From Macrostomum lignano (taxonomy: Eukaryota), in contig NIVC01003147.1 of the NCBI GenBank assembly GCA_002269645.1, positions 1-37,277 on the forward strand: 37,277 bases of DNA, in the 5' to 3' direction. Shown here piece after piece: positions 1 to 28,599 of this stretch. The stretch's first letter is position 1, and every line of letters starts with the position of its first letter. The position numbers and the translations under genes are program-made. The notes beneath the pieces were generated by a model that worked only from the letters and a program-made list of their open reading frames with translations, was not told the DNA's origin and made no database searches.

Positions 1-2317
1 CCGACTGTCTCTCCGTTCGAGACCAACAAGGAAGCACTCCCATCCATCTCGCTGCTGAGTTTCAGGGCGCCGATTCCATGCAGTTCTTCAAATCAGTCCT
101 CGGATCCGACTGCTTCCATCAGCCTGGCAATTGCCAACGCACTGCCATTCACCAAGCCGCTATGAATAAGAAGACTAACTCCTGTCTCAAGTGGCTGGTC
201 AACGAGTGCGGAACCGACTGTCTCTCCGTTCGAGACCAACAAGGAAACACTCCCGTCCATCTCGCTGCTTGGAAGCAGGGCGCCGATTCCATGCAGTTCT
301 TCAAATCAGTCCTCGGATCCGACTGCTTCCATCAGCCTGGCTACTTACAAGAAACTGCCATTCACTTGGCCGCTATGAATGAGACTAACTCCTGTCTCAA
401 GTGGCTGGTGAACGAGTGCGGAACCGACTGTCTCTCCGTTCGAGACCAACAAGGAGACACTCCCGTCCATCTCGCTGCTTGGAAGCAGGGCGCCGATTCC
501 ATGCAGTTCTTCAAATCAGTCCTCGGATCCGACTGCTTCCATCAGCCTGGCCGATTCCAACGCACTGCCATTCACTGTGCCGCTGAGAATGAAGCTACTA
601 ACTCCTGTCTCAAGTGGCTGGTGAACGAGTGCGGAACCGACTGTCTCTCCGTTCGAGACCAACAAGGAAACACTCCCGTCCATCTCGCTGCTTTCTGTCA
701 GGGCGCCGATTCCATGCAGTTCTTCAAATCAGTCCTCGGATCCGACTGCTTTCATCAGCCAGGCTGCGTACAACGCACTGCCATTCACTGGGCCGCTAGG
801 AATGAAGCTACTAACTCCTGTCTCAAGTGGCTGGTGAACGAGTGCGGAACCGACTGTCTCTCCGTTCGAGACCAACAAGGAAACACTCCCGTCCATCTCG
901 CTGCTTTGTTTCAGGGCGCCGATTCCATGCAGTTCTTCAAATCAGTCCTCGGATCCGACTGCTTCCATCAGCCTGGCCGATTCCAACGCACTGCCATTCA
1001 CTGTGCCGCTGAGAATGAAGCTACTAACTCCTGTCTCAAGTGGCTGGTGAACGAGTGCGGAACCGACTGTCTCTCCGTTCGAGACCAAGAAGGAGACACT
1101 CCCGTCCATCTCGCTGCTTTCTGTCAGGGCGCCGATTCCATGCAGTTCTTCAAATCAGTCCTCGGATCCGACTGCTTTCATCAGCCTGGCCGATTCCAAC
1201 GCACTGCCATTCACCAGGCCGCTATGAATGAGACTAACTCCTGTCTCAAGTGGCTGGTGAACGAGTGCGGAACCGACTGTCTCTCCGTTCGAGACCAACG
1301 AGGAAAGACTCCAGTCCATCTCGCTGCTTGGAAGCAGGGCGCCGATTCCATGCAGTTCTTCAAATCAGTGCTCGGATCCGACTGCTTCCATCAGCCTGGC
1401 TACTTACAAGAAACTGCCATTCACTTGGCCGCTATGAATGAGACTAACTCCTGTCTCAAGTGGCTGGTGAACGAGTGCGGAACCGACTGTCTCTCCGTTC
1501 GAGACCAACAAGGAAACACTCCCGTCCATCTCGCTGCTTTCTGTCAGGGCGCCGATTCCATGCAGTTCTTCAAATCAGTCCTCGGATCCGACTGCTTTCA
1601 TCAGCCAGGCTGCGTACAACGCACTGCCATTCACTGGGCCGCTAGGAATGAAGCTACTAACTCCTGTCTCAAGTGGCTGGTGAACGAGTGCGGAACCGAC
1701 TGTCTCTCCGTTCGAGACCAACGAGGAAACACTCCCGTCCATCTCGCTGCTTGGAAGCAGGGCGCCGATTCCATGCAGTTCTTCAAATCAGTCCTCGGAT
1801 CCGACTGCTTCCATCAGCCTGGCCGATTCCAACGCACTGCCATTCACTGTGCCGCTGAGAATGAAGCTACTAACTCCTGTCTCAAGTGGCTGGTGAACGA
1901 GTGCGGAACCGACTGTCTCTCCGTTCGAGACCAACAAGGAAACACTCCCGTCCATCTCGCTGCTTGGAAGCAGGGCGCCGATTCCATGCAGTTCTTCAAA
2001 TCAGTCCTCGGATCCGACTGCTTCCATCAGCCTGGCTACTTACAAGAAACTGCCATTCACTTGGCCGCTATGAATGAGACTAACTCCTGTCTCAAGTGGC
2101 TGGTGAACGAGTGCGGAACCGACTGTCTCTCCGTTCGAGACCAACAAGGAGACACTCCCGTCCATCTCGCTGCTTGGAAGCAGGGCGCCGATTCCATGCA
2201 GTTCTTCAAATCAGTCCTCGGATCCGACTGCTTCCATCAGCCTGGCCGACTCCAACGCACTGCCATTCACTGGGCCGCTAGGAATGAAGCTACTAACTCC
2301 TGTCTCAAGTGGCTGGT
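1..2317 (+). repeat. Coding tandem array of 210/213-nt units (70/71 aa, two ankyrin repeats each), about 11 units
   Basis: Alternating TPVHLAA and TAIHxAA ankyrin motifs on a near-invariant nucleotide scaffold. Confidence 0.95.
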
Positions 2318-3909
2318 TCAGCAACTCGGCCGGTCATGTCTTTTGAAACGAGGTTTTAACGGGATTACAGCGGCTCATCTGGCTGCTCAATATCAAGATG
2401 TCGAAACGCTCAGCTTCATCGTTGACTTACTGGGTGTCTCTGTCCTTGACCTACGGGATGCCTCGCACTTTCTTCCATGGAAGCGAAAGTCTGTTGCTGA
2501 CTACGCGAAGCTGAACTCTCGGCACGGGTCTCAGTTGACGCGGTGGATCGCTGAGCGGCGGCACCAGCAGAGGTCCCAGTCTGAGAAGACGCCGACAGTA
2601 CCGTAAGTTTTGTATGAAAAAAGCGGATATATTGGCACGTCTCTTATAGTGACATTAAAAATTGAATGCTGGATTTACGAGCTAATTAATAGCATTACAT
2701 TTTGAAAAAAAACTTTTTTGAACGAAGTCAAATCTTTTTTGTGGGCTGCATGCAATGCTCATAGAATATGATTTGCTTTGATTGGTTCTTAATTTTTATT
2801 TTCTTCAGAGATATAACAATGATCAGTTTAGGTTTAGTAAGGAAGAGATTATATATAATACAGTGTGCCCACAGCATTCCACGGCATCCCATAGCATTCT
2901 CGGGCAAAACTTCCCACAGAATCAGGCAAAGGTCTCCGGAGATTCTTGTTCTGCACTCATTGCTTCACACCCCGATCACCCTGCTGCATTCCAGACTCCA
3001 TGAGGATTTCTACCAGGTGACGAACCCGCAGGGATTCTGCCTCATCATCAACATCAACACGTACTCAACTGGCAGCGGCGAAGAGGAGCGCAAAGGCTCG
3101 GAGCGGGATGTGGACCGAGTGAGGAAGCTTTTCAGGAAGCTGAGTTTCACCATCAAGGAGGTGCAAAATCCCACAACTGCAGAGATCGATGACTTCCTCA
3201 ATGAGACAAAGAAGTCCAAGGAGCTCGCCAAGCACGGCAGTTTTGTCTGCTTCCTGATGGCCCACGGCCGCAAGGACCCACAGGGAAGGGACTGCATTAT
3301 CGATGGCCATGGAGTGCAGAGTCCGGTTCTGGAGCTCGCAGCCAAGTTCAAGGTGGGTCTGGTCTGGCTCATCTGTGCATATGATGCAAAGCATTGCAGC
3401 TCTACAAATTTCTACACATTTCCCAACCCTCCTCCAGGCCTCCGTCTGCCCCGACCTGGCGGGCAAGCCGAAGATCTTCTTTGTCCAGGCCTGCCGCGGC
3501 AGTGGCACAGACGAAGTGACGCACAGGGGACTGGCAGTCGACCAGCTGCCCCCAGAGTTCGCGCAGAACCCGGCCCTGTACCCGCCAGAGAGTGACTTCC
3601 TGTTCTGCTTCCCACCACAGAGGGTCAGGTGTCCTACCGCGACCCTCAGACTGGCAGCGTCTTCGTGCAGACCCTGTGCGACTACATCGAGCAATTTTAC
3701 ACAGAGAAGCACCTGGAGGACATCATGATTCTCGTGAAGCGGCACATGGCGGAGAAGCCGTGCGAGTTCAGAAACGAGAGAGGCGAACTTATAAAGTACT
3801 ATTGCGTTGCTCAGACCGTGTCACAGCTCGCTCGGCAGGTCTCCTTTGATCGAGCAAAGCTCAGAAGCGCTCACGGAGTCTGCAGCTGTTCAGCTTGGGT
3901 TCTCGTTGA
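3..3909 (+). CDS. Ankyrin-repeat caspase, paralog 1 (5'-truncated by window edge); join(<3..2602,2809..3352,3438..3909) with two 1-nt deletions versus paralog 2 in the last exon
   Basis: Frame is open from base 3 through >=23 ankyrin repeats. Donor CC|GTAAGT at 2603 and acceptor TTTCTTCAG| at 2808 join in frame to the caspase exon. Caspase motifs present: CLIINI, ERKGSERD, FLMAHG, KPKIFFVQACRG, DFL, VSYR. Missing T after 3613 and missing C near 3851 relative to paralog 2. Confidence 0.8.
2603..2808 (+). other. Intron 1 of paralog 1 (206 nt, phase 2) linking ankyrin exon to caspase exon
   Basis: GTAAGT donor, AT-rich body, TTTTATTTTCTTCAG acceptor. CC+A gives Pro, then DITMIS in the caspase frame. 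Confidence 0.85.
3353..3437 (+). other. Intron 2 of paralog 1 (85 nt, phase 0) within caspase p20
   Basis: AAG|GTGGGT ... CCTCCAG|GCC. Removal restores AAKFKASVCPDLAGKPKIFFVQACRG. Confidence 0.9.
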
Positions 3910-3994
3910 AAACATGTTGCAGAATCAGAGTGAAGTCTGTCATGTTATATTTGATGCTTATTAGCCACTTGTTAAGTTCTTGTCGTTTGATGTT

Positions 3995-5145
3995 GACTAC
4001 TTGATGCTTACTTGACTCTGCCTACTCTCTCATAACTGTGACCCCCAGTGACTACTTGATGCTTACTTGACTCTGCCTACTCTCTCATAACTGTGACCCC
4101 AGTGACTACTTGATGCTTACTTGACTCTGCCTACTCTCTCATAACTGTGACCCCAGTGACTACTTGATGCTTACTTGACTCTGCCTGCTCTCTCATAACT
4201 GTGACCCCCAGTGACTACTTGATGCTTACTTGACTCTGCCTACTCTCTCATAACTGTGACCCCAGTGACTACTTGATGCTTACTTGACTCTGCCTACTCT
4301 CTCATAACTGTGACCCCAGTGACTACTTGATGCTTACTTGACTCTGCCTACTCTCTCATAACTGTGACCCCAGTGACTACTTGATGCTTACTTGACTCTG
4401 CCTACTCTCTCATAACTGTGACCCCCAGTGACTACTTGATGCTTACTTGACTCTGCCTACTCTCTCATAACTGTGACCCCAGTGACTACTTGATGCTTAC
4501 TTGACTCTGCCTACTCTCTCATAACTGTGACCCCCAGTGACTACTTGATGCTTACTTGACTCTGCCTGCTCTCTTATAACTGTGACCCCAGAGACTACTT
4601 GATGCTTACTTGACTCTGCCTACTCTCTCATAACTGTGACCCCAGTGACTACTTGATGCTTACTTGACTCTGCCTACTCTCTCATAACTGTGACCCCCAG
4701 TGACTACTTGATGCTTACTTGACTCTGCCTACTCTCTCATAACTGTGACCCCCAGTGACTACTTGATGCTTACTTGACTCTGCCTGCTCTCTCATAACTG
4801 TGACCCCCAGTGACTACTTGATGCTTACTTGACTCTGCCTGCTCTCTTATAACTGTGACCCCAGAGACTACTTGATGCTTACTTGACTCTGCCTGCTCTC
4901 TTATAACTGTGACCCCAGTGACTACTTGATGCTTACTTGACTCTGCCTGCTCTCTTATAACTGTGACCCCAGAGACTACTTGATGCTTACTTGGCTCTGC
5001 CTGCTCTCTCATAACTGTGACCCCAGAGACTACTTGATGCTTACTTGACTCTGCCTGCTCTCTTATAACTGTGACCTCAGTGACTACTTGATGCTTACTT
5101 GACTCTGCCTACTCTCTCATAACTGTGAACCCAGAGACTACTTGA
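3995..5145. repeat. 54-55 bp minisatellite, about 21 copies
   Basis: Unit gactacttgatgcttacttgactctgcctactctctcataactgtgacccc(c)agt repeated head to tail with no spacers. Confidence 0.95.
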
Positions 5146-5639
5146 TTTTTTTCATCTACCTTTAGTTTTTCAGCTGATGGTACATATTATGTAGTGTTGC
5201 TACCGCATCTATTCAAGTTTTCATCTGCTCACTGTGCCTAAGTTACATTTTCAATTCCAATTGCAAGTCTCATTCTCAGCGCAAGACCAACTCCAAATAC
5301 ACAAATTAGAGCAGACTTTGCCGTCGCTACCAACAAAACTGAGAGCTGTTTTCTTAGAAACATGGATGCTGCCAGCTTCACTCAGAGACCGCCGAAATGA
5401 AAACGGGTTCGAGTCTAGGGAGGGAGGCGCAGAGAGACAATTGCGGCTTGAGAGCACAGGGTGCGGCTGTGCTCAGAGATTCGGTGCGGGGTGAAAGGCT
5501 GAGTATCTTCTCTCGCTGGCTGCAGCAGAGGCAACAATGATAAAAAGGCATCTAAACAGGCCAGGGCTGAGTCGCAGTGGCTGCCTATGCGACTCGATTG
5601 CAGCTCAACTCAAGCATGGAAGCCGTGCGAGACGCTTTT

Positions 5640-5698
5640 GTCTCTTTTTCTCTCTCTCTGTCTCTCTCCTTCTCTCCTCTCTCTCTCTGTCTCTCTCC

Positions 5699-5738
<40 letters not shown>

Positions 5739-6135
5739 CTCTCCTCTCTCTCTGTCTCTCTCCTTCTCTCCTCTCTCTGTCTGTCTCTCTCCTTCTCTCC
5801 TCTCTCTTTCTGTCTCGCTCCTTCTCTCCTCTCTCTCTCTGTCTCTCTCCTTCTCTCCTCTCTCTTTCTGTCTCGCTCCTTCTCTCCTCTCTCTCTCTGT
5901 CTCTCTTCTTCTCTCCTCTCTCTTTCTGTCTCTCTCCTTCTCTCCTCTCTCTCTCTGTCTCTCTCCTTCTCTCCTCTCTCTTTCTGTCTCGCTCCTTCTC
6001 TCCTCTCTCTCTGTCCCTCTCCTTCTCTCCTCTCTCTCCCTGTATCTCTCCTTCTCTCCCCTCTCTTTCTGTCTCGCTCCTTCTCTCCTCTCTCTCCCTG
6101 TCTCTCTCCTTCTCTCCTCTCTCTTTCTGTCTTCT
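5640..6135. repeat. CT-rich compound microsatellite
   Basis: ctctctccttctctcctctctct-type units, almost pure pyrimidine. Confidence 0.9.
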
Positions 6136-6221
6136 AACTTGACATTTGACAGGGTTTTTTCTGCAGTGGAGAAAAGAAGAATTAGCAATGCTCCTTGCCC
6201 TCATTGCTTTAGAATTAGCAA

Positions 6222-6740
6222 TGAAAGTCAGAGGGATTGGCATTGAGAGTCAGAGGGATTAACATTTAGAGTCAGAGGGATCGGGAATGAGAGTCAGAGG
6301 ATTGGCATTGAGAGTCAGAGAGATCGGGAATGAGAGTCAGAGGGATTGGCATTGAGAGTCAGAGAGATCGGGAATGAGAGTCAGAGGGATTGGCATTGAG
6401 AGTCAGAGAGATCGGGAATGAGAGTCAGAGGGATTGGCATTGAGAGTCAGAGAGATCGGGAATGAGAGTCAGAGGGATTGGCATTGAGAGTCAGAGAGAT
6501 CGGGAATGAGAGTCAGAGGGATTGGCATTGAGAGTCAGAGAGATCGGGAATGAGAGTCAGAGGATTGGCATTGAGAGTCAGAGAGGATTGGCATTGAGAG
6601 TCAGAGAGGATTGGCATTGAGAGTCAGAGAGGATTGGCATTGAGAGTTAGAGAGGATTGGCATTGAGAGTTAGAGAGATCGGGAATGAGAGTCAGAGAGG
6701 ATTGGCATTGAGAGTTAGAGAGATCGGGAATGAGAGTCAG
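6222..6740. repeat. 22-bp minisatellite with alternating A/B variants (44-bp higher order in its centre)
   Basis: gagagtcagagggattggcatt alternating with gagagtcagagagatcgggaat. Confidence 0.9.
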
Positions 6741-7442
6741 GTGAACTGATGCACTGGAAGTCACTATACGAGTATACTGTCCTAAAACTTGCTCAAGCCC
6801 TTTGAAGCAGAGCTGAGAAAGAGCGGTGAAACTGGAGGCGAGTAAAGTTGAGACGCAGATGCAGAGAAGACACCCTGCAAAAGCATTTGAGTTGAAACGA
6901 ATCCAAAATAATGATATTTTTGTTGTCAAGCGAGGGCTTTGACCCCGCCACCCCTCATTGCAGTTTATTCAAGTGGCCAGGACTGCCGCAGTAAAATGCT
7001 CTGGAAGGGGGGCGCGTCGGTTGCTAAAAACAGAGGGCTTGGGGTCTGTTTTCTTAGAAACGAAGCTGCATCTCTGTCATACAACCCGAAGCCACCCCCT
7101 ACCGTCCGAAGCTTTTTCTGCTGCTCAGCTGCCTCTGTGCTCAAAGCCTGCAGGGGCGGTGAGGTTGGTTGACTGTTCTCAACTCAGTGAAAAGAAAATG
7201 AGCATTCGAGTGTCTGTGAAGCTGAGCCCCAGCCCAGACCGAGAACGGCAATGACGCGTGACGCACTCCTAACTCCGATGCTGAGATTTAGAAGATTTTT
7301 TCAGGAAATTTAAAGTAACTTTTCCGCTTATGGCTACTGAAAGTAACTTTAAAGCATTTCACATGCTCCTGAAATGCAAGCAGCAGGCAGATGTGTAAGA
7401 AATCTGACACTGTGAGTGTACTTCAGAAGTCTGTGAATCTGC

Positions 7443-7830
7443 GTGATACTGTGTGATACTTTGTGATACTGTGTGAGACTGTGTGAGACTGTGTGATACT
7501 GTGTGATACTGTGTGATACTGTGTGAGACTGTGTGAGACTGTGTGATACTGTGTGATACTGTGTGATACTGTGTGAGACTTTGTGATACTTTGTGAGACT
7601 GTGTGATACTGTGTGATACTGTGTGAGACTGTGTGATACTGTGTGATACTGTGTGATACTTTGTGATACTGTGTGAGACTGTGTGAGACTGTGTGATACT
7701 GTGTGATACTGTGTGATACTGTGTGAGACTTTGTGATACTTTGTGAGACTGTGTGATACTGTGAGATACTGTGTAAGACTGTGTATGACTCTGTGATACT
7801 GTGTGATACTGTGCGAGACTCTGTGACAAA
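7443..7830. repeat. 10-bp tandem repeat
   Basis: ctgtgtgata / ctgtgtgaga units. Confidence 0.9.
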
Positions 7831-8289
7831 TGTGTGATGACTGTCTGTGAGACTGCGATACCGTGTGAGTGTTTGTAAAGAATGTCTGTGTGAGAATGGA
7901 TAAATTGTATGAAATTACTGATTCACTCGCGCGACAATGTGAATAAGGGGAGCCTTATCAAGCAGATCCATCTAGAAAAATTGTAATTTTTTAAACAGAA
8001 ATCGTCTGGAAACTTTAGAACTAATAAAACTGGCCTATATTAATCTTACACTGCTTGCAAGAAACCTAAAACGACATTAGAAGGTGAATAGACCCCCCTG
8101 ACTCGAGAGGGGCGTGTTTCGCAACTTCAAATATTACAAGCTCATAAATTCATCAGCTGCAATATCGAAAAAGTCACGAGTTTCATGTCTCTTGAGGCTG
8201 GCCTCGCTACACCTCGCAGCAACTTCGCGAAAAAGCAACACTTTTAGTCGGCATGCAACTTCACGCGCAAGTCATCAGCAACATCCTCA

Positions 8290-9273
8290 AGCCATCACCC
8301 CCCCCCCACTGTCCACAACCTGCTGTGGGAAAGCTCGGTATGCTTCATCTGAACAATGAAGTCCTCGGACATTTTTGTCGCAGGGACGATGAAAAAATTT
8401 CGTGTGACAATAAACGCTGGCCTTGGACTACACGTGCGCTCAGATGCCCTAATCCAAGGGATTAAAGGTCCGAAGTTGACGGCGGCCACATGCTGGGAGG
8501 CCAGTAGTCGGTCATCGCCCCGTCGAGGAAACGCCTCGTCGTTATGGAGCTCCATCCTGCTGTCACACATAGTTGCCATCCAGGAGCCTGCAGCAGCTGC
8601 TGGTACACTGCAACCCCTTCCGGCTGAACGGCACAAAGATCGCCGGCGCCTTCCGACCGTCAGTGAAGACGACTCCGACGATGGCCGCCAGAAGCTTTGC
8701 GGCGGTGATGCAGGAAATCTCGGTTGTTGCAGCGGTTGCGCACAGGGTCAACAGTAGAACAGTTTCTCGTCCGCGCGAAGACGATCGTGCGACCAGCGTC
8801 TCCGGCTCTTCATCCATATCAGCAGCAGATCGCGCGATCCCTGCTTTGCCTTCTGCGTCTCAGTAGCAAATGGCGAACTATCGAGCGCAGATGCAGGTCG
8901 TTCTTCATCGGTCGCTGCGTCAGATTTATGCATGAAAACTGACAATTATCGTTTTTTCGTGTATTTGCCCCTAATTGGGCCGTTTTATCGTTGTGCGTGT
9001 GTGCGCAGAACGTTTTCGCAAATAGGGCTTCTAAACATAGCCTCGCCCTCGCCTCAAGAAACCATCTTCCAACTGTTAAAACTTTGCTGCTAATTTTAGC
9101 CTCTGCTGCTCTTATATGTGTCAGTCCTTCAGTTCCGTGTTGGATTATTTGTACTACTACGCTCGTAGCAATTAGACACGCTGCATGGACATTGTTGCCG
9201 GCCAATTCGTGCTCTGTGGCGAGCTTTCTGATGGACGGTCGAGAGTTGCGTCGGATGTTGCCTTCCACAGCAG
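8290..9273 (-). mobile_element. Decayed Tc1/mariner (maT-like) transposase relic
   Basis: Across frameshifts and stops, in the expected order: IRRNSRPSIRKLA (HTH), IVF-DEKLF-TVD (~8765-8790), GVVFTDGRK, NYV*QQDGAP (8545-8562), WPPSMWPPSTSDL-NPLD (~8450-8500). Cut at 9273 by an LTR end. Confidence 0.7.
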
Positions 9274-9329
9274 TGTAAGAATAAGCCGAGACGAGAAAGT
9301 GGCTTAAGGCGTAGACCGACACTTGACTG
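9274..9329 (-). repeat. Truncated 3' LTR
   Basis: 9276-9329 is identical to 11949-12002 (54 bp). Minus strand ends ...TTCTTACA. Confidence 0.75.
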
Positions 9330-10716
9330 TTTCAAAAAAGAAATAACAAAAACTGGATTTAATTAGTATACGCTTCACCAAAAAGACTGGGGCGCCGTCA
9401 AAGTTCAGGCTGTCCTCGTCAGTATTGTGCAGTTGCGCCGCTGGTTGCAGTTGAGGTGCTGCAGCTGGACTGGCTGTGTTGCATGCGCGCCCCGCAGTTC
9501 TCGGCCGAAATGCATCCCCGAAGGTGTCTGACCAATAGACTTGTGGACTGAAGTGCGGTAGCCCATCAGTGCAATCTGCAGATAAAGATCCCAGTCTCGC
9601 TGATTCTCGTTTACTCATGCTCGCAACAGCTGCACCAGCGTCCGGTTCATCCATTCACAACCGCCGTCTCCTTCAGGGTGGTAGCCTGTCGTCCGAGTCT
9701 TGTCGATTTTCAGCAGCCGCATCGTCTCTTGAAACAGCTGCGACTCCCAGTTCCGAGCCTGGTCGGTGTGCACCGACTGCGGGACTCCGAAGGGACACAC
9801 ATTGGCAGGATGCTACAGTTCACCAGCACGTTAGCACCAGTGGCTGAGCAGGACACCTCCACCACTGGGTGCACTGAGATTTTCACTTGCGGAACGGCAC
9901 CCCGGCGGTCGCCGCTCCACCGAAGTTTCCTGATTTCTGAGTGCAAAATCTTTGAACATGGCCCGGCCTACCGCACTTCCAGTATGTCACAACTCTGCGT
10001 CTGTCGCCACTCTCACAATGATCCTGGTCCTTTGTCTCCCAGCGATTGAGCTTGTTGGACAGCTCCTGCAGAGACCGTTGAATTTCGAATGCAAAGGCTT
10101 CGGGAACCTCAGCAGCTAGATCCGTAGCGGCGCCTCCTTGCGACTGTATAGATTCCACGAATCGCGCTGTTTCCACCGCATCAGCGAATTTCGCCTTTGG
10201 CTGCATCTGCATCTGCATCTGCATTTGCACAACTGGGTCCCTCAATCCGGATAGAAACCGACCTTAGAGCAGCTCGTCCTTCGCTGTCACTGACGTCTCC
10301 TGCTTTCGTCTCCACCAACTCGGGAAAGCGCGCTTTGCCGCAACAATCAGAGCATCGGAATAGTCTGCAACCAACTGACCGTCCTTTTGAGTCAGATTGA
10401 AGAACTGCGCCTGCAGCTCAGCAGATGATGTCGATGGCCGAAATCGATTTTTCAGAGCCTTCTCAAAGCCGTTCTGGGACAGGGCAGCATCTAAATTGCT
10501 GGCCGCTTGATATGATTTATCGTCGAGGAATGACAGCAGAGCATTCTTGCGCTGATCCACTGGAAGATGCAAAATTGTTGAATCGTGCCAGCCAACGCTC
10601 AAAGTCCTGTCCAGCTGGTATTGAGGCGGCCGCTAAAACATGTTGACAAAACTAGCTTGGGGCTGGGCTACTGCTACTGCAGCTCTCTGCACTTGAGCTG
10701 CCTTCATTTTCATTAA

Positions 10717-11790
10717 GGCTCATTCACACTGCAATCAAGTGAAAGACCAAGTCGCACGACTCGTTCGACTACACAGCATTTCTTAATTTTTCTGTGATCA
10801 CTTGAAATCTCAGCTAACTTCGAAAATTTTCAAATTCAGCGACAAATGTTAATAAAGCGAGTGCCAGTTGATCAACTAAAACGCTGTACATTGGTCGCTT
10901 GCCTCTTACACAGCACCCCAAGTTGCGCAACACACAAAACTCAACTCAAGCCACTCTATTTCAACAACTCTCCGTCTAGTCTGACTGTCGCTTCACAATT
11001 GATTGGTCATCACACCAGTCAGGTTATTAACTATTTTATAATTTTCCATCACATGAGCCACGGGTCGGCAACTTCGGCCCGCAGGCCACATGCGGTCTGC
11101 AAAGCCTCTCTATCCGGCCTTCGCCGTCCTTTGAAACTCCACAATAGCAATCCGGCCCTTAATGTTTGTCTCTTCTCAGCGCTCTTCTCTCCTCTCCTCT
11201 CCTCTCCTCTCTCCTTCCTCCTCTCCCTCTCTCTCCTAACCTAATTCATCTCTCGTCTCCTCTCGTCTCCTCTTTGCTCCATTCCCTCGCCTCTCCTATC
11301 TCCCTTCTTTCTTTTTTATTACCTCTCATCTTCTCCTTCCTCCGGAGTCATGCTCTAAGGTTCTCTATCTGGCCATTAAGTTAAAAAAGGTTTGCCGACC
11401 CCTGACATAAGCGAAATGAGCAAGCGTGAAAAAACAGCGCCCGTTGGTTGCCACTGAAACCCCTGGTAAAGAAGGTGCAAGAAAATCCTGTTCTATACGA
11501 CCTTCGGCACCCTGACAATCGAAATAACAGGAAAAAGGACGATCCTGTGGTTGAAAACTGCGTAGGAAACGACTCAATATTTTAATTCGTTTCTTTCTTC
11601 GTTTCCGCACATTTAGCGTGACGAAACTGCCGAATTAAGCAGTTTCCTCTAGCACTGCGGAGACCACAGAATTTCTGTCTGCTTTAGTCCGTTTCCAGCA
11701 AAAAAATGCTGCCGAAGAAACGTCCCAATTATCCACAGGGCAGTCATTCTCCTCAGTATCAGTCGGTTGATTGCAGTGTGACCGCTTGCG
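10717..11790. mobile_element. Possible old non-autonomous TIR element
   Basis: 15-bp inverted repeat tcacactgcaatcaa (10724-10738) / ttgattgcagtgtga (11767-11781). Left end follows TTAA. No matching TSD on the right. Confidence 0.35.
11059..11404. mobile_element. hAT (Charlie-like) MITE, 346 bp, with internal CT-rich tract
   Basis: TIRs cacgggtcggcaac / gtttgccgacccctg. 8-bp TSD acatgagc (11051-58) / acataagc (11405-12). Typical ggcccgcaggccacatgcgg subterminal motif. Confidence 0.85.
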
Positions 11791-11934
11791 ATCACTCGTA
11801 AAAAGTCAGTTGATGGCGTGAAAAACTGAGGTGATTGTCAAAGGTTCGTTAATCATCAACTCAATTTTAGTGTGATCACTCGAAAATTGGCATCATTTGA
11901 TGGCGGTGTGGACGAGCCTTTAGTCATAGCCACA

Positions 11935-11945
11935 CGCTGCCACCA
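11935..11945 (-). other. Primer-binding site, probably tRNA-Leu
   Basis: Minus strand TGGTGGCAGCG, 1 nt after the LTR end; complementary to the ...CGCUGCCACCA 3' end typical of eukaryotic tRNA-Leu(AAG/UAG). Confidence 0.7.
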
Positions 11946-11946
11946 A

Positions 11947-12111
11947 TATAAGAATAAGCCGAGACGAGAAAGTGGCTTAAGGCGTAGACCGACACTTGAC
12001 TGCCGCCAAGGCACTCGCTTGTATTCTGACACGCTTGCATTGTACAGCGAGCAAATGTACATACACTTGCGCACATGCCAAACGTTATGCCAAACATAAA
12101 CTATTAAAACA
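11947..12111 (-). repeat. 165-bp LTR
   Basis: Minus strand begins TGTTTT and ends TTCTTATA (ACA in the other copy). Followed by the PBS and preceded by the purine tract GGGGGAGGGGGCAGGTGGG. Confidence 0.65.
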
Positions 12112-12454
12112 CCCACCTGCCCCCTCCCCCAAAAGACTGCTGGAGAATTTCACTTGAAACGGCCGCGATAAGAAGACGAATCAGTGCCGCAGTGTACATA
12201 GCGATAGTCTTTTTTGGAGGAAAGATTTCAACGTACATTGGCTTGAAGACTAGAACCATTTAACTAATGTTTGACTCATGCGAGGCTCTTTCCAGGCTAC
12301 AGTATCTAACCCTGCAACGCAAGGCTAAACGAATCAGTATTTGATCTCATTACCCAGCAACAGCCTCTGCACCCCCTCTCCGCCATTGAATGCCAAGATT
12401 TAATCGTCCGCTCACCCACTCTCTCCGCCACTGACTCACCCAGCCCTGTCTCAC

Positions 12455-15302
12455 ATGGAGCCGCGAGCCTCAATACGCGCATTGGTAGCTGCAGCACTCG
12501 CTGCCAAGGACCTGGACAGCCTCCTCGATCTCTGCTGGCAGCTCGACACCAACCATACCGTCAGCGTCAACCAGTTGGAGCAGTCCATTGCTCACCACGT
12601 GGCCTGCCTTCCCGACGGTCTAAGCTGCATGGAGGCTCTCATTGAGAAACTCGGAACCAAATGCCTCACCTGCACCAACGAGAAGATGAACACTCCAGTG
12701 CACCTGGCTGCCTTGTATCTAGATGAGTCATGGATGGAGCTCATTCACCGAAACCTCGGATGCGACTGCTTCCAGCAGCCTGGCTACATAAAACGCACTG
12801 CCATTCACTGTGCCGCTACGAATGAAAAAACTAACTCCTGTCTCAAGTGGCTGGTGAACGAGTGCGGAACCGACTGTCTCTCCGTTCGAGACCAAGATGG
12901 AGACACTCCCGTCCATCTCGCTGCTTGGAAGCAGGGCGCCGATTCCATGCAGTTCTTCAAATCAGTCCTCGGATCCGACTGCTTCCATCAGCCTGGCCGA
13001 CTCCAACGCACTGCCATTCACCAGGCCGCTATGAATGAAGCTACTAACTCCTGTCTCAAGTGGCTGGTGAACGAGTGCGGAACCGACTGTCTCTCCGTTC
13101 GAGACCAACAAGGAAACACTCCCGTCCATCTCGCTGCTTGGATGCAGGGCGCCGATTCCATGCAGTTCTTCAAATCAGTCCTCGGATCCGACTGCTTTCA
13201 TCAGCCAGGCTGCGTACAACGCACTGCCATTCACTGGGCCGCTAGGAATGAAGCTACTAACTCCTGTCTCAAGTGGCTGGTGAACGAGTTCGGAACCGAC
13301 TGTCTCTCCGTTCGAGACCAACGAGGAAAGACTCCAGTCCATCTCGCTGCTTGGAAGCAGGGCGCCGATTCCATGCAGTTCTTCAAATCAGTCCTCGGAT
13401 CCGACTGCTTCCATCAGCCTGGCCGACTCCAACGCACTGCCATTCACTGGGCCGCTTTGAATGAGACTAACTCCTGTCTCAAGTGGCTGGTGAACGAGTG
13501 CGGAACCGACTGTCTCTCCGTTCGAGACCAACAAGGAAACACTCCCGTCCATCTCGCTGCTTGGAAGCAGGACGCCGATTCAATGCAGTTCTTCAAATCA
13601 GTCCTCGGATCCGACTGCTTCCATCAGCCTGGCAATTGCCAACGCACTGCCATTCACTGGGCCGCTTTTAATGAAGCTACTAACTCCTGTCTCAAGTGGC
13701 TCGTTCAGCAACTCGACCGGTCATGTCTTTTGAAAAGAGGTTTTAACGGGATTACAGCGGCTCATGTGGCTGCTCAATATCAAGATGTCGAAACGCTCAG
13801 CTTCATCGTTGACTTACTGGGTGTCTCTGTCCTTGATCTAAGGGATGCTTCGCACTTTCTTCCATGGAAGCGAAAGTCTGTTGCTGACTACGCGAAGCTG
13901 AACTCTCAGCACGGGTCTCAGTTGACGCGGTGGATCGCTGAGCGGCGGCACCAGCAGAGGTCCCAGTCTGAGAAGACGCCGACAGTACCGTAAGTTTTGT
14001 ATGAAAAAAGCGGATATATTGGCACGTCTGTTACAGTGACATTAAAAATTGAATGCTGGATTTACGAGCTAATTAATAGCATTAAATTTTGAAGAAAAAA
14101 AAGATTTTTAAATGAAGTCAAAGCTTTTTTGTGGGCTGCATGCAATGCTCATAGAATATGATTTGCTTTGATTGGTTCTTAATTTTTATTTTCTTCAGAG
14201 ATATAACAATGATCAGTTTAGGTTTAGTAAGGAAGAGATTATATATAATACAGTGTGCCCACAGCATTCCACGGCATCCCATAGCATTCTCGGGCAAAAC
14301 TTCCCACAGAATCAGGCAAAGGTCTCCGGAGATTCCTGTTCTGCACTCATTGCTTCACACCCCGATCACACTGCTGCATTCCAGACTCCATGAGGATATT
14401 TACCAGGTGACGAACCCGCAGGGATTCTGCCTCATCATCAACATCAACACGTACTCAGCCGGCAGTGGCGAAGAGGAGCGCAAAGGCTCGGAGCGGGATG
14501 TGGACCGAGTGAGGAAGCTTTTCAGGAAGCTGAGTTTCACCATCAAGGAGGTGCAAAATCCCACAACTGCAGAGATCGATGACTTCCTCAATGAGACAAA
14601 GAAGTCCAAGGAGCTCGCCAAGCACGGCAGTTTTGTCTGCTTCCTGATGGCCCACGGCCGCAAGGACCCACAGGGAAGGGACTGCATTATCGATGGCCAT
14701 GGAGTGCAGAGTCCGGTTCTGGAGCTCGCAGCCAAGTTCAAGGTGGGTCTGGGTCTGGCTCATCTGTGCATATGATACAAAGCATTGCAGCTCTACAAAT
14801 TTCTACACATTTCCCAACCCTCCTCCAGGCCTCCGTCTGCCCCGACCTGGCGGGCAAGCCGAAGATCTTCTTTGTCCAGGCCTGCCGTGGCAGTGGCACA
14901 GACGAAGTGACGCACAGGGGGCTGGCAGTCGACCAGCTGCCCCCAGAGTTCGCACAGAACCCGGCCCTGTACCCTCCAGAGAGTGACTTCCTGTTCTGCT
15001 TCCCTACCACAGAGGGTCAGGTGTCCTACCGCGACCCTCAGACTGGCAGCGTCTTCGTGCAGACCCTGTGCGACTACATCGAGCAATTTTACACGGAGAA
15101 GCACCTGGAGGACATCATGATTCTCGTGAGGCGGCACATGGCGGAGAAGCCGTACGAGTTCAGAAATGAGAGAGGCGAACTTATAAAGTACTATTGCGTT
15201 GCTCAGACCGTGTCACAGCTCGCTCGGCAGGTCTCCTTTGATCCGAGCAAAGCTCAGAAGCGCTCACGGAGTCTGCAGCTGTTCAGCTTGGGTTCTCATT
15301 GA
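12455..15302 (+). CDS. Ankyrin-repeat caspase, paralog 2, intact; join(12455..13989,14199..14742,14829..15302), 850 aa
   Basis: About 12 ankyrin repeats (degenerate N-cap, 5 A/B pairs, C-cap). The same two GT-AG introns as paralog 1. Spliced length 2553 nt is in frame to TGA. His-Gly (AHG), QACRG, and S1-pocket Arg residues (RKGS, SYR) are retained. Confidence 0.88.
12690..13705 (+). repeat. Coding di-ankyrin array of paralog 2 (about 5 units)
   Basis: Same 210/213-nt scaffold as 1-2317. Confidence 0.95.
13990..14198 (+). other. Intron 1 of paralog 2 (209 nt, phase 2)
   Basis: CC|GTAAGT ... TTCTTCAG|A. Differs from the paralog 1 intron by small indels while the flanking exons keep frame. 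Confidence 0.85.
14743..14828 (+). other. Intron 2 of paralog 2 (86 nt, phase 0)
   Basis: AAG|GTGGGT ... CCTCCAG|GCC. 1 nt longer than in paralog 1, consistent with non-coding status. Confidence 0.9.
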
Positions 15303-15377
15303 AAAACTTCAGAGTGAAGCCTGTAATTTTACATTTGATGCTCATGTGTGACTGTTACGTTCTTGTTAATCGATGTT

Positions 15378-15518
15378 GACTACTTAATGTTCACTTGACC
15401 CCGTCTGCTCCCTCATAACTGTGGCCTTCAGTAACTACTTGTTCGCTTGACCCCTGCCAGCTCCCTCATAACTGTAACCCCAGAGACTACTGATTTTCAC
15501 CTGACTCTTGCCTGCTCA
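15378..15518. repeat. Two to three degenerate units homologous to the 54-55 bp minisatellite
   Basis: gactactt...cacttgacccc...ctccctcataactgt(g/a)...cag at the position equivalent to the array after paralog 1. Confidence 0.65.
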
Positions 15519-17829
15519 TGAGCGAACGGGAAAGTCATTGTCCTAGCAAAATCTTCAATTCTGCCAATTGTACCACAACTATGCAAAACTGTGTCAAACT
15601 AATTTATTTGGCAGACTTGGCACAGTTAAGAAAATTTGAAAGCCAAACTTTCAGCAACTGTGTCAGGAATATTTCCAATTGTCTCAGGTATAAAACTGAT
15701 CGTAGAGGAATGTCTCTTAGAAGTTTCCTACCTTATTTTAGCTCATACTTTTCTCAGCACTACTAGAGCAGTTAAATCTGTTGGCAGTGTACGTACTATT
15801 GATTTCAGCCATATAGCAATCGTCAACAATAATACTTATGTAATCTAATCAGTATAATATCAGATATGTGATACGAGCGTAGGAACCAGTAGACAGTAGT
15901 ACCATGCAATAGATGTTGCTCTTGTCTCAATAAACGAACACGTAACACAATGGGCAATAATTATTCATGTCCATATCCAACGCCACACAGGCCGGTAATT
16001 TTTTTGTTTTTTTTAAGAAGAAAGATGCAGGGCAAACCCAGGTGCCATAGTACGGAAAACTATATACTCAGCAACAGTCAAAAGTTCCACCCTCCAAGCG
16101 AGATGGAATTTTTCTCACTTATTGTGAGTGACGCAACTTGCGGCACGCAGCGAAGCTTATTGTCACTTGGGGGGCTTGGGTCTGTGTAATGGTACAAAAG
16201 TGCGTAACTTTAAGAGGACAAATGTTCAGTCTAATCCTCGGGGTTAAGGACACCCGGGTACCAGGCTTTTGTATTAGCATCTGTAGAGGGATCCGTAGCG
16301 AGTATGTGCAGTAGTAGTATATCAAAATAATTAAAATAGAAAAAAATCGCACATCCATCTATTTTATTACCAGGAATGTTTCGGTTTTAGAACCCTAATC
16401 CATATCCCTGTCCCTAATGGTCCATGGTTTCTGGTACGTCTGTCTTACCCAATGTGTCCTAAGATGTATGTGCTCTTCTATATCGTAAACTTCTGCTTAT
16501 ATAACAGTTTTATTACGCAGTCACATAAGTGCATTTGTGCGGTAAGTGTTTGGGGTGCTTCAACTGTTCGTTTTTTTCATCATTCAAATATTTCGAATGA
16601 CAATAGAAGTTAAGAAAGTTTCAGACGATCATAATTTGAACTAAACGGACAACACGAGTCTGATGGAAACAGGTTACAATTACCTGTAGTAATTGTTGTA
16701 GTAACGCACTGTTCTGGCTCAGCTACAAGCATACGAACTTAATGTAGACTATGCGCCACGCATTAAAAGTACACTGGACCATTTCTATCTCGGTGTCCTG
16801 TATTCGCAGCGTGCACTGACCTACAACGCACACGCAGTGTGTCTCCATATGTCGACCGCAGTGCTGCAGTGTCCGCTGGCCTGTTCGGGTCATAGCGCCG
16901 CAAAACCTGCTGATGGCGGACAAAGAGTTGGTGAAGTTCATTGAGAAGGACATTGACCGCAGAGAGATGTCCCACAATAGCAGATAACATTAATTAACGA
17001 TCGCAAGTTTGCAGGCCACTTCCAGACACCTAACGCGGATAGTAGAATCGAGTTATCCTGCCATAAGGAACGGTACCGCGGCCATGTAGAGCGCCTTATG
17101 AACGCAATTATGATCATTTTAATTGTGGGAAAAGCTGGATACAATAAGACTATAGAAGGTATAATTGATTTGAAATTTTACAAGAAATCGTTATTAAAAC
17201 AAAATGATCATTTTTTGGTAAACAATTTCGAACTTCTGAGACGTTTTGAAATTTTTAAGTTTCGAGCTTGTGAAGTTTCGAGCTTATGCACTTTAGAGCT
17301 CGTGAAGGTTCGAGACAAGAACAAATAGAGTTAGTTGAATGACAACTTGCAAGTCGTAGAAAAATATTTGAAGGCAGATTGTTCTGCAATTTTGATTTGT
17401 CTATTGCTTGCTGCGGTTGGTCACTGGTTTTTGTTGGCTTGTTGCGGTTCACGGCCTCCTTGCATCTGCATGGCCTGTTCCAAATTAGCCAGGCAATAAA
17501 ACCTCGCTTTCCTTCCCCCGCGATTTCTCCCTAGCTATCTTAAGACGCACGGGCAGTCCAGGCCGCGCAGTCAACCCCGACCCCTCAAGCAAACACTTGG
17601 CCCGGGAATTTCACTCCTCGCGCGTACAATCTGTCCTGCAATGTACATAGCAATTAGTTTTTTTTTCAGGCGACTATTTCAATGTACATTGGCTTGCATT
17701 CTGGTACCACTTGGACTGAAGTACTGAACCAATGTTAGACTCATGTGTGCGGCTCTTTCCGGGCAACAGTGCCTTAAACTGCATAGCAAGACTTAGTTTC
17801 AATATCCAGCACACATACCCAAGCACTAA

Positions 17830-18981
17830 ATGCAGACTAAAGTAAATCCAACACGGACAGGCAATAGCAGGAGTCTCCCTGGCAGCCGGCTGCCATTGCT
17901 GCTGCTGCTTGTCCTGCTTGCCGTCTTCCTCTGCCTGAGCTCCTACGCCCCGAAGCTCAGCATCTACCAAATCAGCTTCCCGGTCTTCAACACGGATGAC
18001 GACTTCGCCGACTCCTTCGCCCGAGTGCTGCAGCGTCAGCAGTCGGGCCGCTGCCTTCACGAGTTCAACTCCAGCCTGAAGCTGCCACTGCTGCGACTCG
18101 ACTCACCAGCCGAGCTGGACCCGAAGATTCGAACCCGGGCCGCCGCGGCCTGGCTGCGCTCGTCTGTCGACGTAGTGTTCGCCGCCTCGGTGCGCAACGC
18201 CATGCGCGGACTGCCCGGCACCGCCCAGCAGATGCGGCGCCTCGCCGACAGCTTCCGCAGCGTCGCCTTCGTCTTCGTGGAGAACGACAGCGCGGACGAT
18301 ACGAGGCGCTTCCTGACCGACTGGCGCCGACGAGACGCCCGGGTGCGCCTGCTGGGTTGCGGGGGCGCCGACGCCGCGTGCCGCATGAACATCAGCTACT
18401 CCTCCGGCCGCGCCCACCGCCAGGGCTGGTCGCTGCCGCGCAACCAAGTCGAGAACCGCGAGCGCGGCATCGTGATGTCCGCCCTGAGGAACATCTACCT
18501 GCGCCACATCTACCGGCAGCTCTACAGACCCGACCGCGACTCCCTGCTCATCGTTGTGGATCCCGATCTCAGCTTCAAGCCGTGGGACCTGGACGCCATC
18601 CTGCAGGGCCTGTACTACTTCCGGGACAGGCCGGAGCTGCAGTCTCTGTGCGCCCACACCACGTCTCATGACGTCATCTACGACAACTGCACCCTGGTGT
18701 TCCAGCGCACCAGGCTGTTCTCCCAGGTCAGCCGCGAATCGACGATCGTCTCCGATTTCAACACGACGGCTCAGCCGCCCGGCCTGCCGCCCGTGAAGGT
18801 GGCCGGCTGCTTCCAGGCCTTCACCGCCTACCGATTGAGCCACCTGGCCGAACAGAAGCTCGAGTACGGACCGGCCCGAGGTGAGACCGTCTGCGAGCAC
18901 CTGACGCTGGCCAGACAGCTGATGGAGAACTACCTGGACCTGGGCAAGGAGGTTGTCAAGGAGAACGAGGGTGGTTTGTGA
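17830..18981 (+). CDS. Intronless type II membrane GT-A fold glycosyltransferase-like protein, copy A (383 aa)
   Basis: N-terminal hydrophobic anchor LLLLLVLLAVFLCL; FVENDSADDT; MSALRNIYL; DxD motif VVDPDL; VAGCFQAFTAY; CEH. High GC3. Confidence 0.8.
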   Translation: MQTKVNPTRTGNSRSLPGSRLPLLLLLVLLAVFLCLSSYAPKLSIYQISFPVFNTDDDFADSFARVLQRQQSGRCLHEFNSSLKLPLLRLDSPAELDPKIRTRAAAAWLRSSVDVVFAASVRNAMRGLPGTAQQMRRLADSFRSVAFVFVENDSADDTRRFLTDWRRRDARVRLLGCGGADAACRMNISYSSGRAHRQGWSLPRNQVENRERGIVMSALRNIYLRHIYRQLYRPDRDSLLIVVDPDLSFKPWDLDAILQGLYYFRDRPELQSLCAHTTSHDVIYDNCTLVFQRTRLFSQVSRESTIVSDFNTTAQPPGLPPVKVAGCFQAFTAYRLSHLAEQKLEYGPARGETVCEHLTLARQLMENYLDLGKEVVKENEGGL

Positions 18982-20237: not shown

Positions 20238-21416
20238 TCACGCATTGCCCTCGTTCTGCTTGACAACCTGCAGCTGCATGCCCAGGTCCAGGTAGTTCTC
20301 CGTCAGCTGTCTGGCCAGCGTCAGGTGCTCGCAGACGGTCTCCCCGCGTACTGGTCCGTACTCGAGCTTCTGTTTGGCCAGGTGGCTCAGTCGGTAAGCG
20401 GTGAAGGCCTGGAAGCAGCCGGCCACCTTCAGAGGTGGCAGGCCGGGCGGCGGCGACTTGGTGCGAAAGGCAGCGATGATCGGCGACTCCTTGCCGGCCT
20501 GGGAGAAGAACCCGTTCTGCTGGAACACCAGGGTGCACGGGTCGTAAATGTAACTGCCGTACCTGGTGTGGGCGCACAGGGACTGCAGCTCCGGCCTGTC
20601 CCGGAAGTAGTACAGGCCCTGCAGGATGGCGTCCAGGTCCCACGGCTTGAAGCTGAGATCGGGATCCACAACGATGAGCAGGGAGTCGCGGTCGGGTCTG
20701 TAGAGCTGCCGGTAGATGTGGCGCAGGTAGATGTTCCTCAGGGCGGACATCACGATGCCGCGCTCGCGGTTCTCGACTTGGTTGCGCGGCAGCGACTAGC
20801 CCTGGCGGTGGGCGCGGCCGGAGGAGTAGCTGATGTTCATGCGGCACGCGGCGTCGGCGCCCCCGCAACCCAGCAGGCGCACCCGGGGGTCTCGTCGGCG
20901 CCAGTCGGTCAGGAAGCGCCTCGTATCGTCCGCGCTGTCGTTCTCCACGAAGACGAAGGCGGCGCTGCGGAAGCTGTCGGCGAGGCGCCGCATCTGCTGG
21001 GCGGTGCCGGGCAGTCCGCGCATGGCGTTGCGCACCGAGGCGGCGAACACTACGTCGACAGACGAGCGCAGCCAGGCCGCGGCGGCCCGGGTTCGACTCT
21101 TCGGGTCCAGCTCGGCCGGTGAGTCGAGTCGCAGCAGTGGCATCTTCAGGCTGGAGTTGAACTCGTGAAGGCAGCGGCCCGACCGCTGACGCTCCAGCAC
21201 TCGGGCGAAGGAGTGGGCGAAGTCGTCATCCGTGTCGGGGAAGCTTCTAGCTGAGTATCGCGTGCTCAAACCCGAATAGATGACGCTTGAGCTCTGCAGA
21301 CAGATGTAGGCAAAAAGCATCCCGGACAAAAGCAGCAACACCTGCACCTGCAGCAGCGGCCTGCGGTTGCTCGAGAACCGTCTTGCACACGAACATGTAG
21401 CAGGGGGTCCGGGCAT
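20238..21416 (-). pseudogene. Glycosyltransferase-like copy B, inverted paralog, with one in-frame TAG (Trp to stop) at 20796-20798
   Basis: ORFs 20796..21416 and 20238..20753 share a frame. CAG GGC TAG TCG aligns to CAG GGC TGG TCG in copy A. Confidence 0.8.
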
Positions 21417-22573: not shown

Positions 22574-23601
22574 TTTGAGCTACTAGTTCCGGTGAAAGCT
22601 AGCTATAACCTGGAATTGGAAGTTTTTTTGCATTGCTTCTTATCGCATTTCGTAGGAACCAACTGGAATTTTCAGTTTTAAGACGCTGCATGAAGCTGCG
22701 AGCTGTCGGAATGGCTGAAGCTGGCACTTCTTGCAAGGCGATTGCGCCGATTTGCGCGTCACTTCGGGCGCGCGCCGAAGACGATCCGGGCAGCTGCTGG
22801 TCAAGGACGACTAAAGTAACGTATATTTAAAGTATATTAAAGTAAAGTATTTAAAGTAAAGTAAAGTATAACGTATATTTAAGTAACGTACTTAAGTAGT
22901 CCTTGATGCTGGTCAAGTGGCAACGCGCCAGCACAGTTGCCATGGCAACTCTGGCCGACTTGGCAGCTGCCACAGGACCGCATCAACAGACTCGTGCTTA
23001 GCATGCCACGGCGACTTGCTACCCTGCTTCATCGAGGCGAACACGCGCTACTGACTTCTAGCGAGAGACTGTCTGCATGCATGTGCACTTTTGTGCGATT
23101 ACGATGCACTTTACTGCTGCAGCCTGCTGCTGAGATGCAGTAGCTGTTACGCAACTCTGCTGAGCCGGCCGTGGCACCCAGCAAGCTGCGCCAGGGGTAG
23201 GGGGGTTTAGCTGTTGCTGGGACTGTAGCTTCTGTAATATCTCAAGGATGAGAGGTCAGAACGTACAGTATTGGGGGGCTATTAAACCGAATTTTTTTTT
23301 TATGTACACATCCCATATTAGTATGTTCTATTCTTATACAATGTGCTGAATGTGTGCACAATAAGCATCACTTTTGTCGCCATTAAAACCATCAGGAATG
23401 ATGGGAATCACAACAGCTTCATGTGTATTCTCCATGGCTGAGATCTTTTTCTTCGTTTTCTTTGGACTGCAGAGTTTAATGTTTTGGTCTTCTAAAGATA
23501 GGAAATATTTTTGCGCCATGGATTCTATTTTATTGCAATCAGCTCGATTTGACTGAACATATTTTGTCTACTTTTTTATATGGCCAAGGTGAAGTGTTTA
23601 G

Positions 23602-28553: not shown

Positions 28554-28599
28554 TGGCGGCTGCTGCGGGGTTTGCAATAGACAATGACTAAATTAAAGA

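Follow-up and report, generated by a model that had tools for sequence, protein, structure and literature searches.

Hypervariable ankyrin arrays in place of a caspase pro-domain in Macrostomum lignano: a candidate germline repertoire of binding surfaces

The 37,277-bp window analysed here is a whole contig of the Macrostomum lignano Mlig_3_7 assembly (GCA_002269645.1), and all positions refer to it unless another locus is named. It carries two paralogous three-exon genes on the forward strand, in which exon 1 encodes a capped array of ankyrin repeats and exons 2 and 3 encode a caspase-3/7-like protease. The units of these arrays are nearly identical to one another except at a few positions that belong to the binding face of the ankyrin fold. 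Modules of the variable residues reassort among units, the number of units differs between gene copies, and sequence has been exchanged both between the paralogs and among separate loci. The best overall explanation, to which a probability of about 0.6 is assigned, is that the genes belong to a Macrostomum-restricted family in which a hypervariable, capped ankyrin solenoid takes the place of the caspase pro-domain and provides a germline-encoded repertoire of binding surfaces.

Gene structure and protein identity

The array exon of paralog 1 (1-2602), delimited by translation and by a table of its units, is open from the contig edge. When the frames of both paralogs are split at the motif ADSMQFF, a partial unit (3-68) comes first in paralog 1 and is followed by ten core units (starts at 69, 282, 492, 705, 918, 1131, 1341, 1551, 1764, and 1977) and a cap unit (start at 2187), after which a C-terminal cap helix runs as far as the splice donor. 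The frame is open from base 3 and uninterrupted for 2.6 kb; therefore, the array extends past the contig edge. Tandem Repeats Finder describes the array as 10.9 copies of a 213-bp period. The stop codons that end the long open reading frames (ORFs) of both array exons (2604-2606 in paralog 1 and 13991-13993 in paralog 2) are intronic, and both genes run on into caspase exons. In paralog 1, the apparent stop codon falls in intron 1 (2603-2994, GT...AG), which is bounded by the donor cc/gtaagt at 2602/2603 and the acceptor ccag/A at 2994/2995. The joined product reads ...TPTVP-LHEDFYQV..., and its junction TVP/LHEDFYQV is the same as in two GenBank models, P0001 and P0194. Exon 2 (2995-3352), recognized by a Peptidase_C14 match (E = 2.3e-16) and by tblastn, opens the p20 region and contributes the catalytic His within the motif FLMAHG. 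Exon 3 (3438-3909) encodes the catalytic Cys in QACRG and the p10 region. Relative to a sister contig (NIVC01000874.1), exon 3 of paralog 1 has 1-bp deletions at 3614 and 3851, and these deletions break the caspase frame after LFCFP. They could mark a young pseudogene or could be PacBio indel errors, which are visible in both contigs.

Paralog 2 is intact. Its exon 1 (12455-13989) consists of an N-terminal cap (12455-12733), a diverged unit (u0, 12734-12937), three core units (starts at 12938, 13151, and 13364), and a cap unit (start at 13574) that is followed by the C-terminal cap. Splicing at GT-AG introns joins it to caspase exon 2 (14385-14742) and to caspase exon 3 (14829-15302), in which QACRG is present. 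The three exons together translate exactly to PAA53038.1 (P0194; BOX15_Mlig014209g1), a protein of 788 amino acids annotated as "hypothetical protein"; no papers naming Mlig014209 or related genes were found. The initial annotation of this DNA had counted at least 11 units in paralog 1 and about five in paralog 2, which agrees with 11 units plus the partial one in the former and one diverged unit plus four in the latter. Two other readings of the locus were rejected. An ankyrin gene followed by a separate caspase gene is ruled out, as the donor and acceptor described above join the frames and the spliced product is PAA53038.1. A bacterial or phage origin is ruled out by the eukaryotic character of the window, with its GT-AG introns and many minisatellites, and by the close protein matches, all of which are from M. 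lignano.

Several lines of evidence identify the two parts of the encoded proteins. Pfam Ank_2 matched the two array exons with E = 9.6e-89 (paralog 1) and 3.4e-42 (paralog 2). An AlphaFold2 model of paralog 2 exon 1 is an ankyrin solenoid with a mean predicted local distance difference test score (pLDDT) of 94.3 and a predicted template modeling score (pTM) of 0.86. Foldseek searches with this model returned NOMPC, ankyrin-1/B, and designed ankyrin repeat proteins (DARPins) as the top matches, with a probability of 1.00. Thus, the arrays have both the profile match and the solenoid fold of ankyrin repeats. The caspase part of paralog 2 matched caspase-3 (5jft, 1.7e-31) and caspase-7 (3.3e-30) in a sequence search of the PDB. 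The FLMAHG His and the QACRG Cys both align with the catalytic residues of caspase-3; in other words, paralog 2 has an intact domain with the His-Cys dyad of caspase family C14A.

Variation, module shuffling, and exchange

A unit of 71 or 70 residues consists of two ankyrin repeats (36 and 35 residues in a 71-residue unit). The units are on average 93.8% identical in DNA and 90-97% identical to their consensus in protein, over spans of up to ~780 residues. Only 38 of the 213 unit columns are variable, and most of these lie within nine codons (21, 22, 24, 29, 32, 58, 60, 68, and 69), well beyond what chance would give. Averaged over pairs of units, identity reaches 98.5% across the framework but drops to 61.5% within the nine variable codons. 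Proportions of nonsynonymous (pN) and synonymous (pS) differences separate the two classes further: pN is 0.40 and pS 0.29 in the nine variable codons, as against a pN of 0.003 and a pS of 0.047 in the framework codons. The restriction is not peculiar to the window, as variation is limited to the same nine positions among 26 unique core units from five arrays.

The nine positions have a clear structural meaning in the ankyrin fold. When the TxxH motif is aligned to the ankyrin consensus, unit positions 21, 22, 24, 29, and 32 of the first repeat correspond to consensus positions 2, 3, 5, 10, and 13, and unit positions 58, 60, 68, and 69 of the second repeat correspond to consensus positions 3, 5, 13, and 14. 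DARPin libraries randomize the ligand-contact positions 2, 3, 5, 13, 14, and 33 (PMC1261162). Eight of the nine variable positions coincide with this set (hypergeometric p = 3.7e-8). In the AlphaFold2 model, the variable residues fall in the turns preceding helix 1 and on or just past helix 1, as mapped from the secondary-structure string of the model together with the consensus alignment. The model and the alignment support the placement of the nine variable residues of each unit on the canonical ankyrin binding face, which is formed by the beta-turn tips and helix 1, and they bear out the earlier proposal that these residues form a binding surface.

The variable residues are organized as modules. 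The initial annotation had described a small set of modules that recur in new orders, and every example it gave is present. YLQE-L-M occurs three times in paralog 1 (units 282, 1341, and 1977) and so does RFQR-C-E (units 492, 918, and 1764). CVQR-W-R, with the silent bases TTT at codon 16 and CCA at codon 19, occurs in both paralogs (units 705, 1551, and 13151), with the correction that TTT at codon 16 is found once without CCA, in unit 1131. QRGK-WK with a silent CCA at codon 62 is likewise shared by both paralogs (units 1131 and 13151). Recombinant units pair one turn with different helix residues, as in RF-C-E and RF-Q-M; in RL-W-R, RL-Q-M, and RL-W-L; and in NC-Q-M and NC-W-F. Further evidence of shuffling comes from a four-gamete test on 17 informative biallelic sites in the 13 complete units of the window. 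The test failed for 55 of 91 site pairs more than 24 nt apart and for 4 of 45 pairs within 24 nt; failure is thus concentrated in distant pairs. The sites fall into four blocks, one for each of the two turns and one for helix 1 of each repeat (A and B); the blocks are linked internally and reassorted with respect to one another. Exchange between units is the likely source of this pattern and recurrent point mutation an unlikely one, because the alternative states differ by several nucleotides per codon.

Comparison with other contigs extends the pattern to further arrays; all copies compared belong to a single PacBio assembly, made from one laboratory line, and may be haplotypes or duplicated chromosome segments. 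The sister contig NIVC01000874.1 (L001/L002) is colinear with window positions 2414-16064 at 96-99.5% identity. Its copy of paralog 1 has ten units in unchanged order with the same silent markers. Leaving aside 1-bp deletions close to an N-gap, the two paralog 1 copies differ over 2.1 kb only by substitutions in two patches, both within variable codons. One patch replaces TTCTGT with TGGAAG (FC versus WK), a change at five of six nucleotides that yields a module found in further units too, and the other replaces AGG with GTG (R versus V). The chance that both patches would land in variable codons is p ~0.016. The sister copy of paralog 2 (P0003) has caps ~99% identical to those in the window and one unit fewer. 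The residues of P0003 differ from those of paralog 2 at nearly all variable codons, and there are very few changes elsewhere in the array.

Two more distant loci are also informative. NIVC01000759.1 (L003) carries a single ankyrin-caspase gene (P0193, 1073 amino acids) with nine units and yet another set of variable residues. Unit number therefore differs between copies, as had been proposed: paralog 2 has four units here and three in the sister contig, and genes of the paralog 1 type have at least 11 in the window and nine in L003. In NIVC01001810.1 (P0200, L004 10001-12797), the caps are only ~80% identical to those of paralog 2 and the C-terminal cap resembles that of an ankyrin-kinase, P0033, whereas the framework of the core units is ~98% identical to that of the window (framework pS 0.07). 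Diverged caps together with near-identical core units are direct evidence of exchange between loci. Along with the identical modules in different genes, they substantiate the earlier suggestion that paralogs exchange sequence.

Synonymous differences in the framework amount to 0.014-0.064 within one array and 0.010-0.072 between arrays of different genes or loci, and the introns of the tandem paralogs diverge by 2.6%, which is comparable. Within-array divergence that is no smaller than between-array divergence would fit ongoing homogenization or a very recent expansion.

The same design is found in a sister family. About 14 M. lignano genes (P0007, P0011, P0012, P0017, and ~10 more) encode capped arrays of 71-residue double repeats fused to a protein kinase. 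This ankyrin-kinase subfamily has its own near-invariant framework and is hypervariable at positions 21, 22, 32, 57, 58, 60, 68, and 69 (33 unique units). The same positions have thus been diversified a second time, independently and on another framework. The kinase domain most closely resembles STE20-group kinases and MAP3K5, and an origin of the RIPK4/ANKK1 type is accordingly unsupported. Older members of the family, P0004 and P0009, have diverged repeats without homogenization. A second, non-repetitive ankyrin family in M. lignano is likewise paired with caspase or kinase.

Proposed function, rival explanations, and known systems

How would such arrays arise, and what would they do? The evolutionary mechanism is probably a combination of unequal crossing-over and gene conversion with diversifying selection. 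Unequal crossing-over and short-tract gene conversion would both homogenize the array and shuffle modules, while diversifying selection would retain and favor new residues at binding positions. The outcome would be a germline repertoire of binding surfaces. The array may bind variable ligands, among which non-self proteins or others that evolve fast are the most plausible. Binding may be coupled directly to caspase activity, either through clustering on the ligand or because an inhibitory pro-domain is released. Two candidate sites of cleavage, conjectured from the sequence, are LHED/F at the pro-domain junction and LAVD/Q in the inter-subunit linker. The sister family would have an equal design with a STE20/MAP3K-like kinase as output. 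A sensor function of this kind is possible, though short of probable, and it is proposed by analogy with known systems. Somewhat more doubtful is the fuller proposal of natural, germline-encoded DARPin-like receptors whose arrays would directly recognize non-self proteins or those of pathogens and trigger cell death through a fused caspase, or signaling through a STE20-like kinase, without a nucleotide-binding oligomerization domain (NOD) or adaptor platform.

Several observations weigh against a germline repertoire coupled to caspase activity. The sensor function is an analogy, and the caspase domain looks like the executioner type, which is normally activated through cleavage and not through recruitment. 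The caspase frame of paralog 1 is shifted as assembled. The simple pN/pS ratio inside the nine variable codons is only 1.39. This modest ratio, together with the surface exposure that the variable residues have by position, would be expected if constraint at the nine positions were merely relaxed; in that case, concerted evolution would homogenize the rest of the unit, the surface residues would drift, and there would be no repertoire function. However, pN at the nine codons exceeds the framework pS by a factor of 8.5, and neutral sites inside homogenized tracts should be homogenized as well. Furthermore, near-identical gene copies differ almost solely in the nine codons, the independent kinase subfamily varies at the same positions, and the other exposed positions of the unit are invariant. 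These results make drift under relaxed constraint improbable. The assembly itself is a further source of doubt. The array is already under way at the contig edge, its copy in the sister contig contains an N-gap, frameshifts, and many 1-bp deletions, and PacBio indel errors are visible in both contigs. Where units are near-identical, read errors or polishing could introduce or remove some of the differences between modules, and at the extreme, the order, length, and mosaic modules of the array could all stem from a tandem repeat that was collapsed, expanded, or mis-polished. PacBio reads are much longer than arrays of 1-2.5 kb. A separately assembled contig preserves the order and silent markers of ten successive units of paralog 1, the frame is unbroken over its 2.6 kb, and the design recurs in three further arrays and ~14 kinase genes, all of which argue against an artefact. 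Such an artefact is very unlikely to account for the overall pattern; it could still affect the total unit number or single module swaps.

The initial annotation had also raised the possibility that the arrays are diversified somatically. Clonally different receptors would then arise by rearrangement or mutation in the manner of the lamprey variable lymphocyte receptors (VLRs), and the one feature that favors this is that the variable blocks look modular and cassette-like, as in the five-of-six-nucleotide FC/WK swap. The evidence goes against it. The germline sequence holds a complete spliced frame of paralog 2 and a complete array exon of paralog 1, and no donor cassettes were found outside the two genes in the 37 kb by tblastn and blastn with a unit. 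There is no reverse transcriptase among the ORFs scanned; deaminases were not searched for. Somatic diversification is therefore regarded as extremely unlikely. A diversity-generating retroelement was considered as well and ruled out, as no template copy of the unit is present in the window, the variable codons differ at all four bases instead of showing adenine-specific changes, and the scanned ORFs contain no reverse transcriptase. A different kind of rival accepts the diversity and assigns it an endogenous, non-immune role. The arrays would recruit cellular substrates or partners, for example in the germline, in regeneration, or in sexual conflict, and their diversity would reflect subfunctionalization or reproductive arms races instead of pathogen sensing. 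Ankyrin domains serve widely as adaptors between proteins, the family has many members and pairs with two different enzymes, and M. lignano caspases with ordinary ankyrin or Ras/Roc N-termini suggest a broad regulatory toolkit. On the other hand, extreme position-specific diversity on a homogenized framework, together with change in unit number among near-identical copies, is documented elsewhere for genes of non-self recognition (PMC4986451), although reproductive conflict would still be compatible with it. An endogenous or reproductive role is thus a serious rival to non-self recognition even at the rather low probability that it is given here.

The closest parallel to the proposed germline repertoire is found in fungi. 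The ANK, TPR, and WD repeats of high internal conservation in fungal NOD-like receptors (NLRs), such as those of the Podospora HNWD family (Dyrka et al. 2014), have been described as following the same evolutionary regime, and highly conserved repeats are rare among metazoan repeat proteins (0.8%) (PMC4986451). In both cases, the tandem solenoid repeats share more than 85% identity, and the M. lignano arrays reach at least 85% identity over at least 100 residues, the level used to define the fungal repeats. In both, variation is limited to a few binding-surface positions with a nonsynonymous excess, which in M. lignano is seen in the high pN of the nine codons relative to both framework values. 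Shuffling within and between members, repeat numbers that differ between copies (here within one assembly), and the combination of one repeat type with different effectors, including cell-death effectors, are also shared. In contrast to the fungal genes, the M. lignano genes are animal genes, their unit is a 71-residue double ankyrin repeat, and the repeats are N-terminal with a caspase or kinase joined directly to their C-terminal side. Pfam gave neither a NACHT nor an NB-ARC domain in the two array exons, the caspase ORFs, or the precomputed Pfam lists of the family, where matches were confined to Ank, Peptidase_C14, Pkinase, and weak ones below threshold. Because they have no NOD domain, the M. 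lignano genes are not NLRs.

Parallels with other systems are more partial. Lamprey VLRs and transcription activator-like (TAL) effectors share near-identical solenoid repeats, few hypervariable specificity residues, and module recombination with the M. lignano arrays, and this likeness is an analogy only. VLRs are leucine-rich-repeat proteins that are somatically assembled from flanking cassettes, and TAL effectors are bacterial DNA-binding repeats. A VLR locus has an incomplete germline gene and flanking donor cassettes, unlike the complete array frames and the cassette-free window described above. DARPin libraries resemble the arrays in their constant framework, in diversity at positions 2, 3, 5, 13, and 14, and in their N- and C-terminal capping repeats (PMC1261162). 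The M. lignano arrays differ from DARPins in that they are natural, germline-encoded, and fused to an enzyme, and in that their repeats have 35-36 residues and a loop that contains an additional short helix. Variation extends to position 10 in one of the two M. lignano repeat types, and position 33 is invariant.

No report of hypervariable, homogenized ankyrin arrays on animal caspases or kinases was found among open-access papers. What would be new here, for hypervariable, concertedly evolving repeat receptors of a known regime, is the animal host and the direct fusion to a caspase; their receptor function is one that we infer. If it is correct, these genes would represent, in an animal, the equivalent of the hypervariable-repeat receptors of fungi, and they would add a new architecture to innate recognition. 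A constant scaffold with few hypervariable contacts and repeat shuffling, a strategy also seen in fungal NLR repeats, lamprey VLRs, and TAL effectors and devised anew by engineers in DARPins, would then have an independent animal origin on the ankyrin fold and would be wired straight to a caspase or kinase. The genes would also offer a tractable system for studying caspase activation by a ligand without a death-fold platform, as M. lignano has laboratory lines, RNA interference, and transgenesis.

Caspase relatives and other features of the window

Ankyrin-pro-domain caspases of flatworms have been described as confined to parasitic species and as sister to caspases with a death effector domain, and M. 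lignano has been credited only with a "kinase pro-domain" caspase (Lee et al. 2014; PMC11463336). The spliced models presented here share with the platyhelminth clade an ankyrin pro-domain that is N-terminal to a p20/p10 caspase domain, in a flatworm. They differ in that the hosts of that clade are parasitic and M. lignano is free-living, and in that the ankyrin part of the M. lignano arrays is common to a kinase family, unlike in the clade as described. Neither repeat homogenization nor hypervariability is described in the papers found on that clade. Ankyrin caspases in a free-living flatworm bear on the published view that free-living flatworms lack them (PMC11463336). In L003, an ankyrin-kinase gene (P0028) lies directly upstream of the ankyrin-caspase gene (L003 2832-5400 and 10001-13691). 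It may be that the published "kinase pro-domain" caspase is a merger of adjacent ankyrin-kinase and ankyrin-caspase genes arranged as in this locus, a reading offered as a suggestion only.

Searches with the caspase domain placed the genes near other M. lignano proteins. Among the named matches, the nearest relatives were other M. lignano caspases, followed by proteins of other animals that are caspase-3/7-like or have multiple caspase domains, one of which bears the label caspase-8. The ankyrin caspases of parasitic flatworms were absent from the indexed caspase-domain search and from the 10 named among 150 matches of an exhaustive HMMER search, and a search with a second M. lignano ankyrin caspase likewise gave none among its named matches. 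Caspases of the same clade on other M. lignano contigs (P0243, P0245, P0249, and P0097) have ordinary, non-homogenized ankyrin repeats or, in one, a Ras/Roc GTPase domain. Identity is ~47% for those with ordinary ankyrin repeats and 39% for the one with Ras/Roc. P0097 carries QAGRG where QACRG is expected.

The intergenic DNA of the window is unusually rich in tandem repeats. A 54-bp minisatellite of 21 copies (3994-5146) begins 85 bp past the stop codon of paralog 1. The homologous site after paralog 2 (15388-15491) has 2 copies, and the site after paralog 1 in the sister contig has ~21. Other long minisatellites lie at 5649-6132 (period 29 bp), 6214-6740 (22/44 bp), 7439-7844 (10 bp), 23592-24482 (29 bp), and 25051-25323 (31 bp). 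An inverted duplication (17990-18664 and 20561-21235; 675 nt, 98% complementary) spans most of an ORF of 383 amino acids (17830-18981) whose product has an N-terminal hydrophobic anchor and a weak match to CAP59 mannosyltransferase (E = 0.006). On the reverse strand, a weak retrotransposon-gag match lies at 34118-34522, and an apparently intronless ORF of 678 amino acids (26541-28577, 64% GC) encodes an RNA recognition motif (RRM) domain and contains GGC repeats. Adjoining this GC-rich ORF are stretches at 29000-33000 and 35000-37277 with a GC content of 26-30%.

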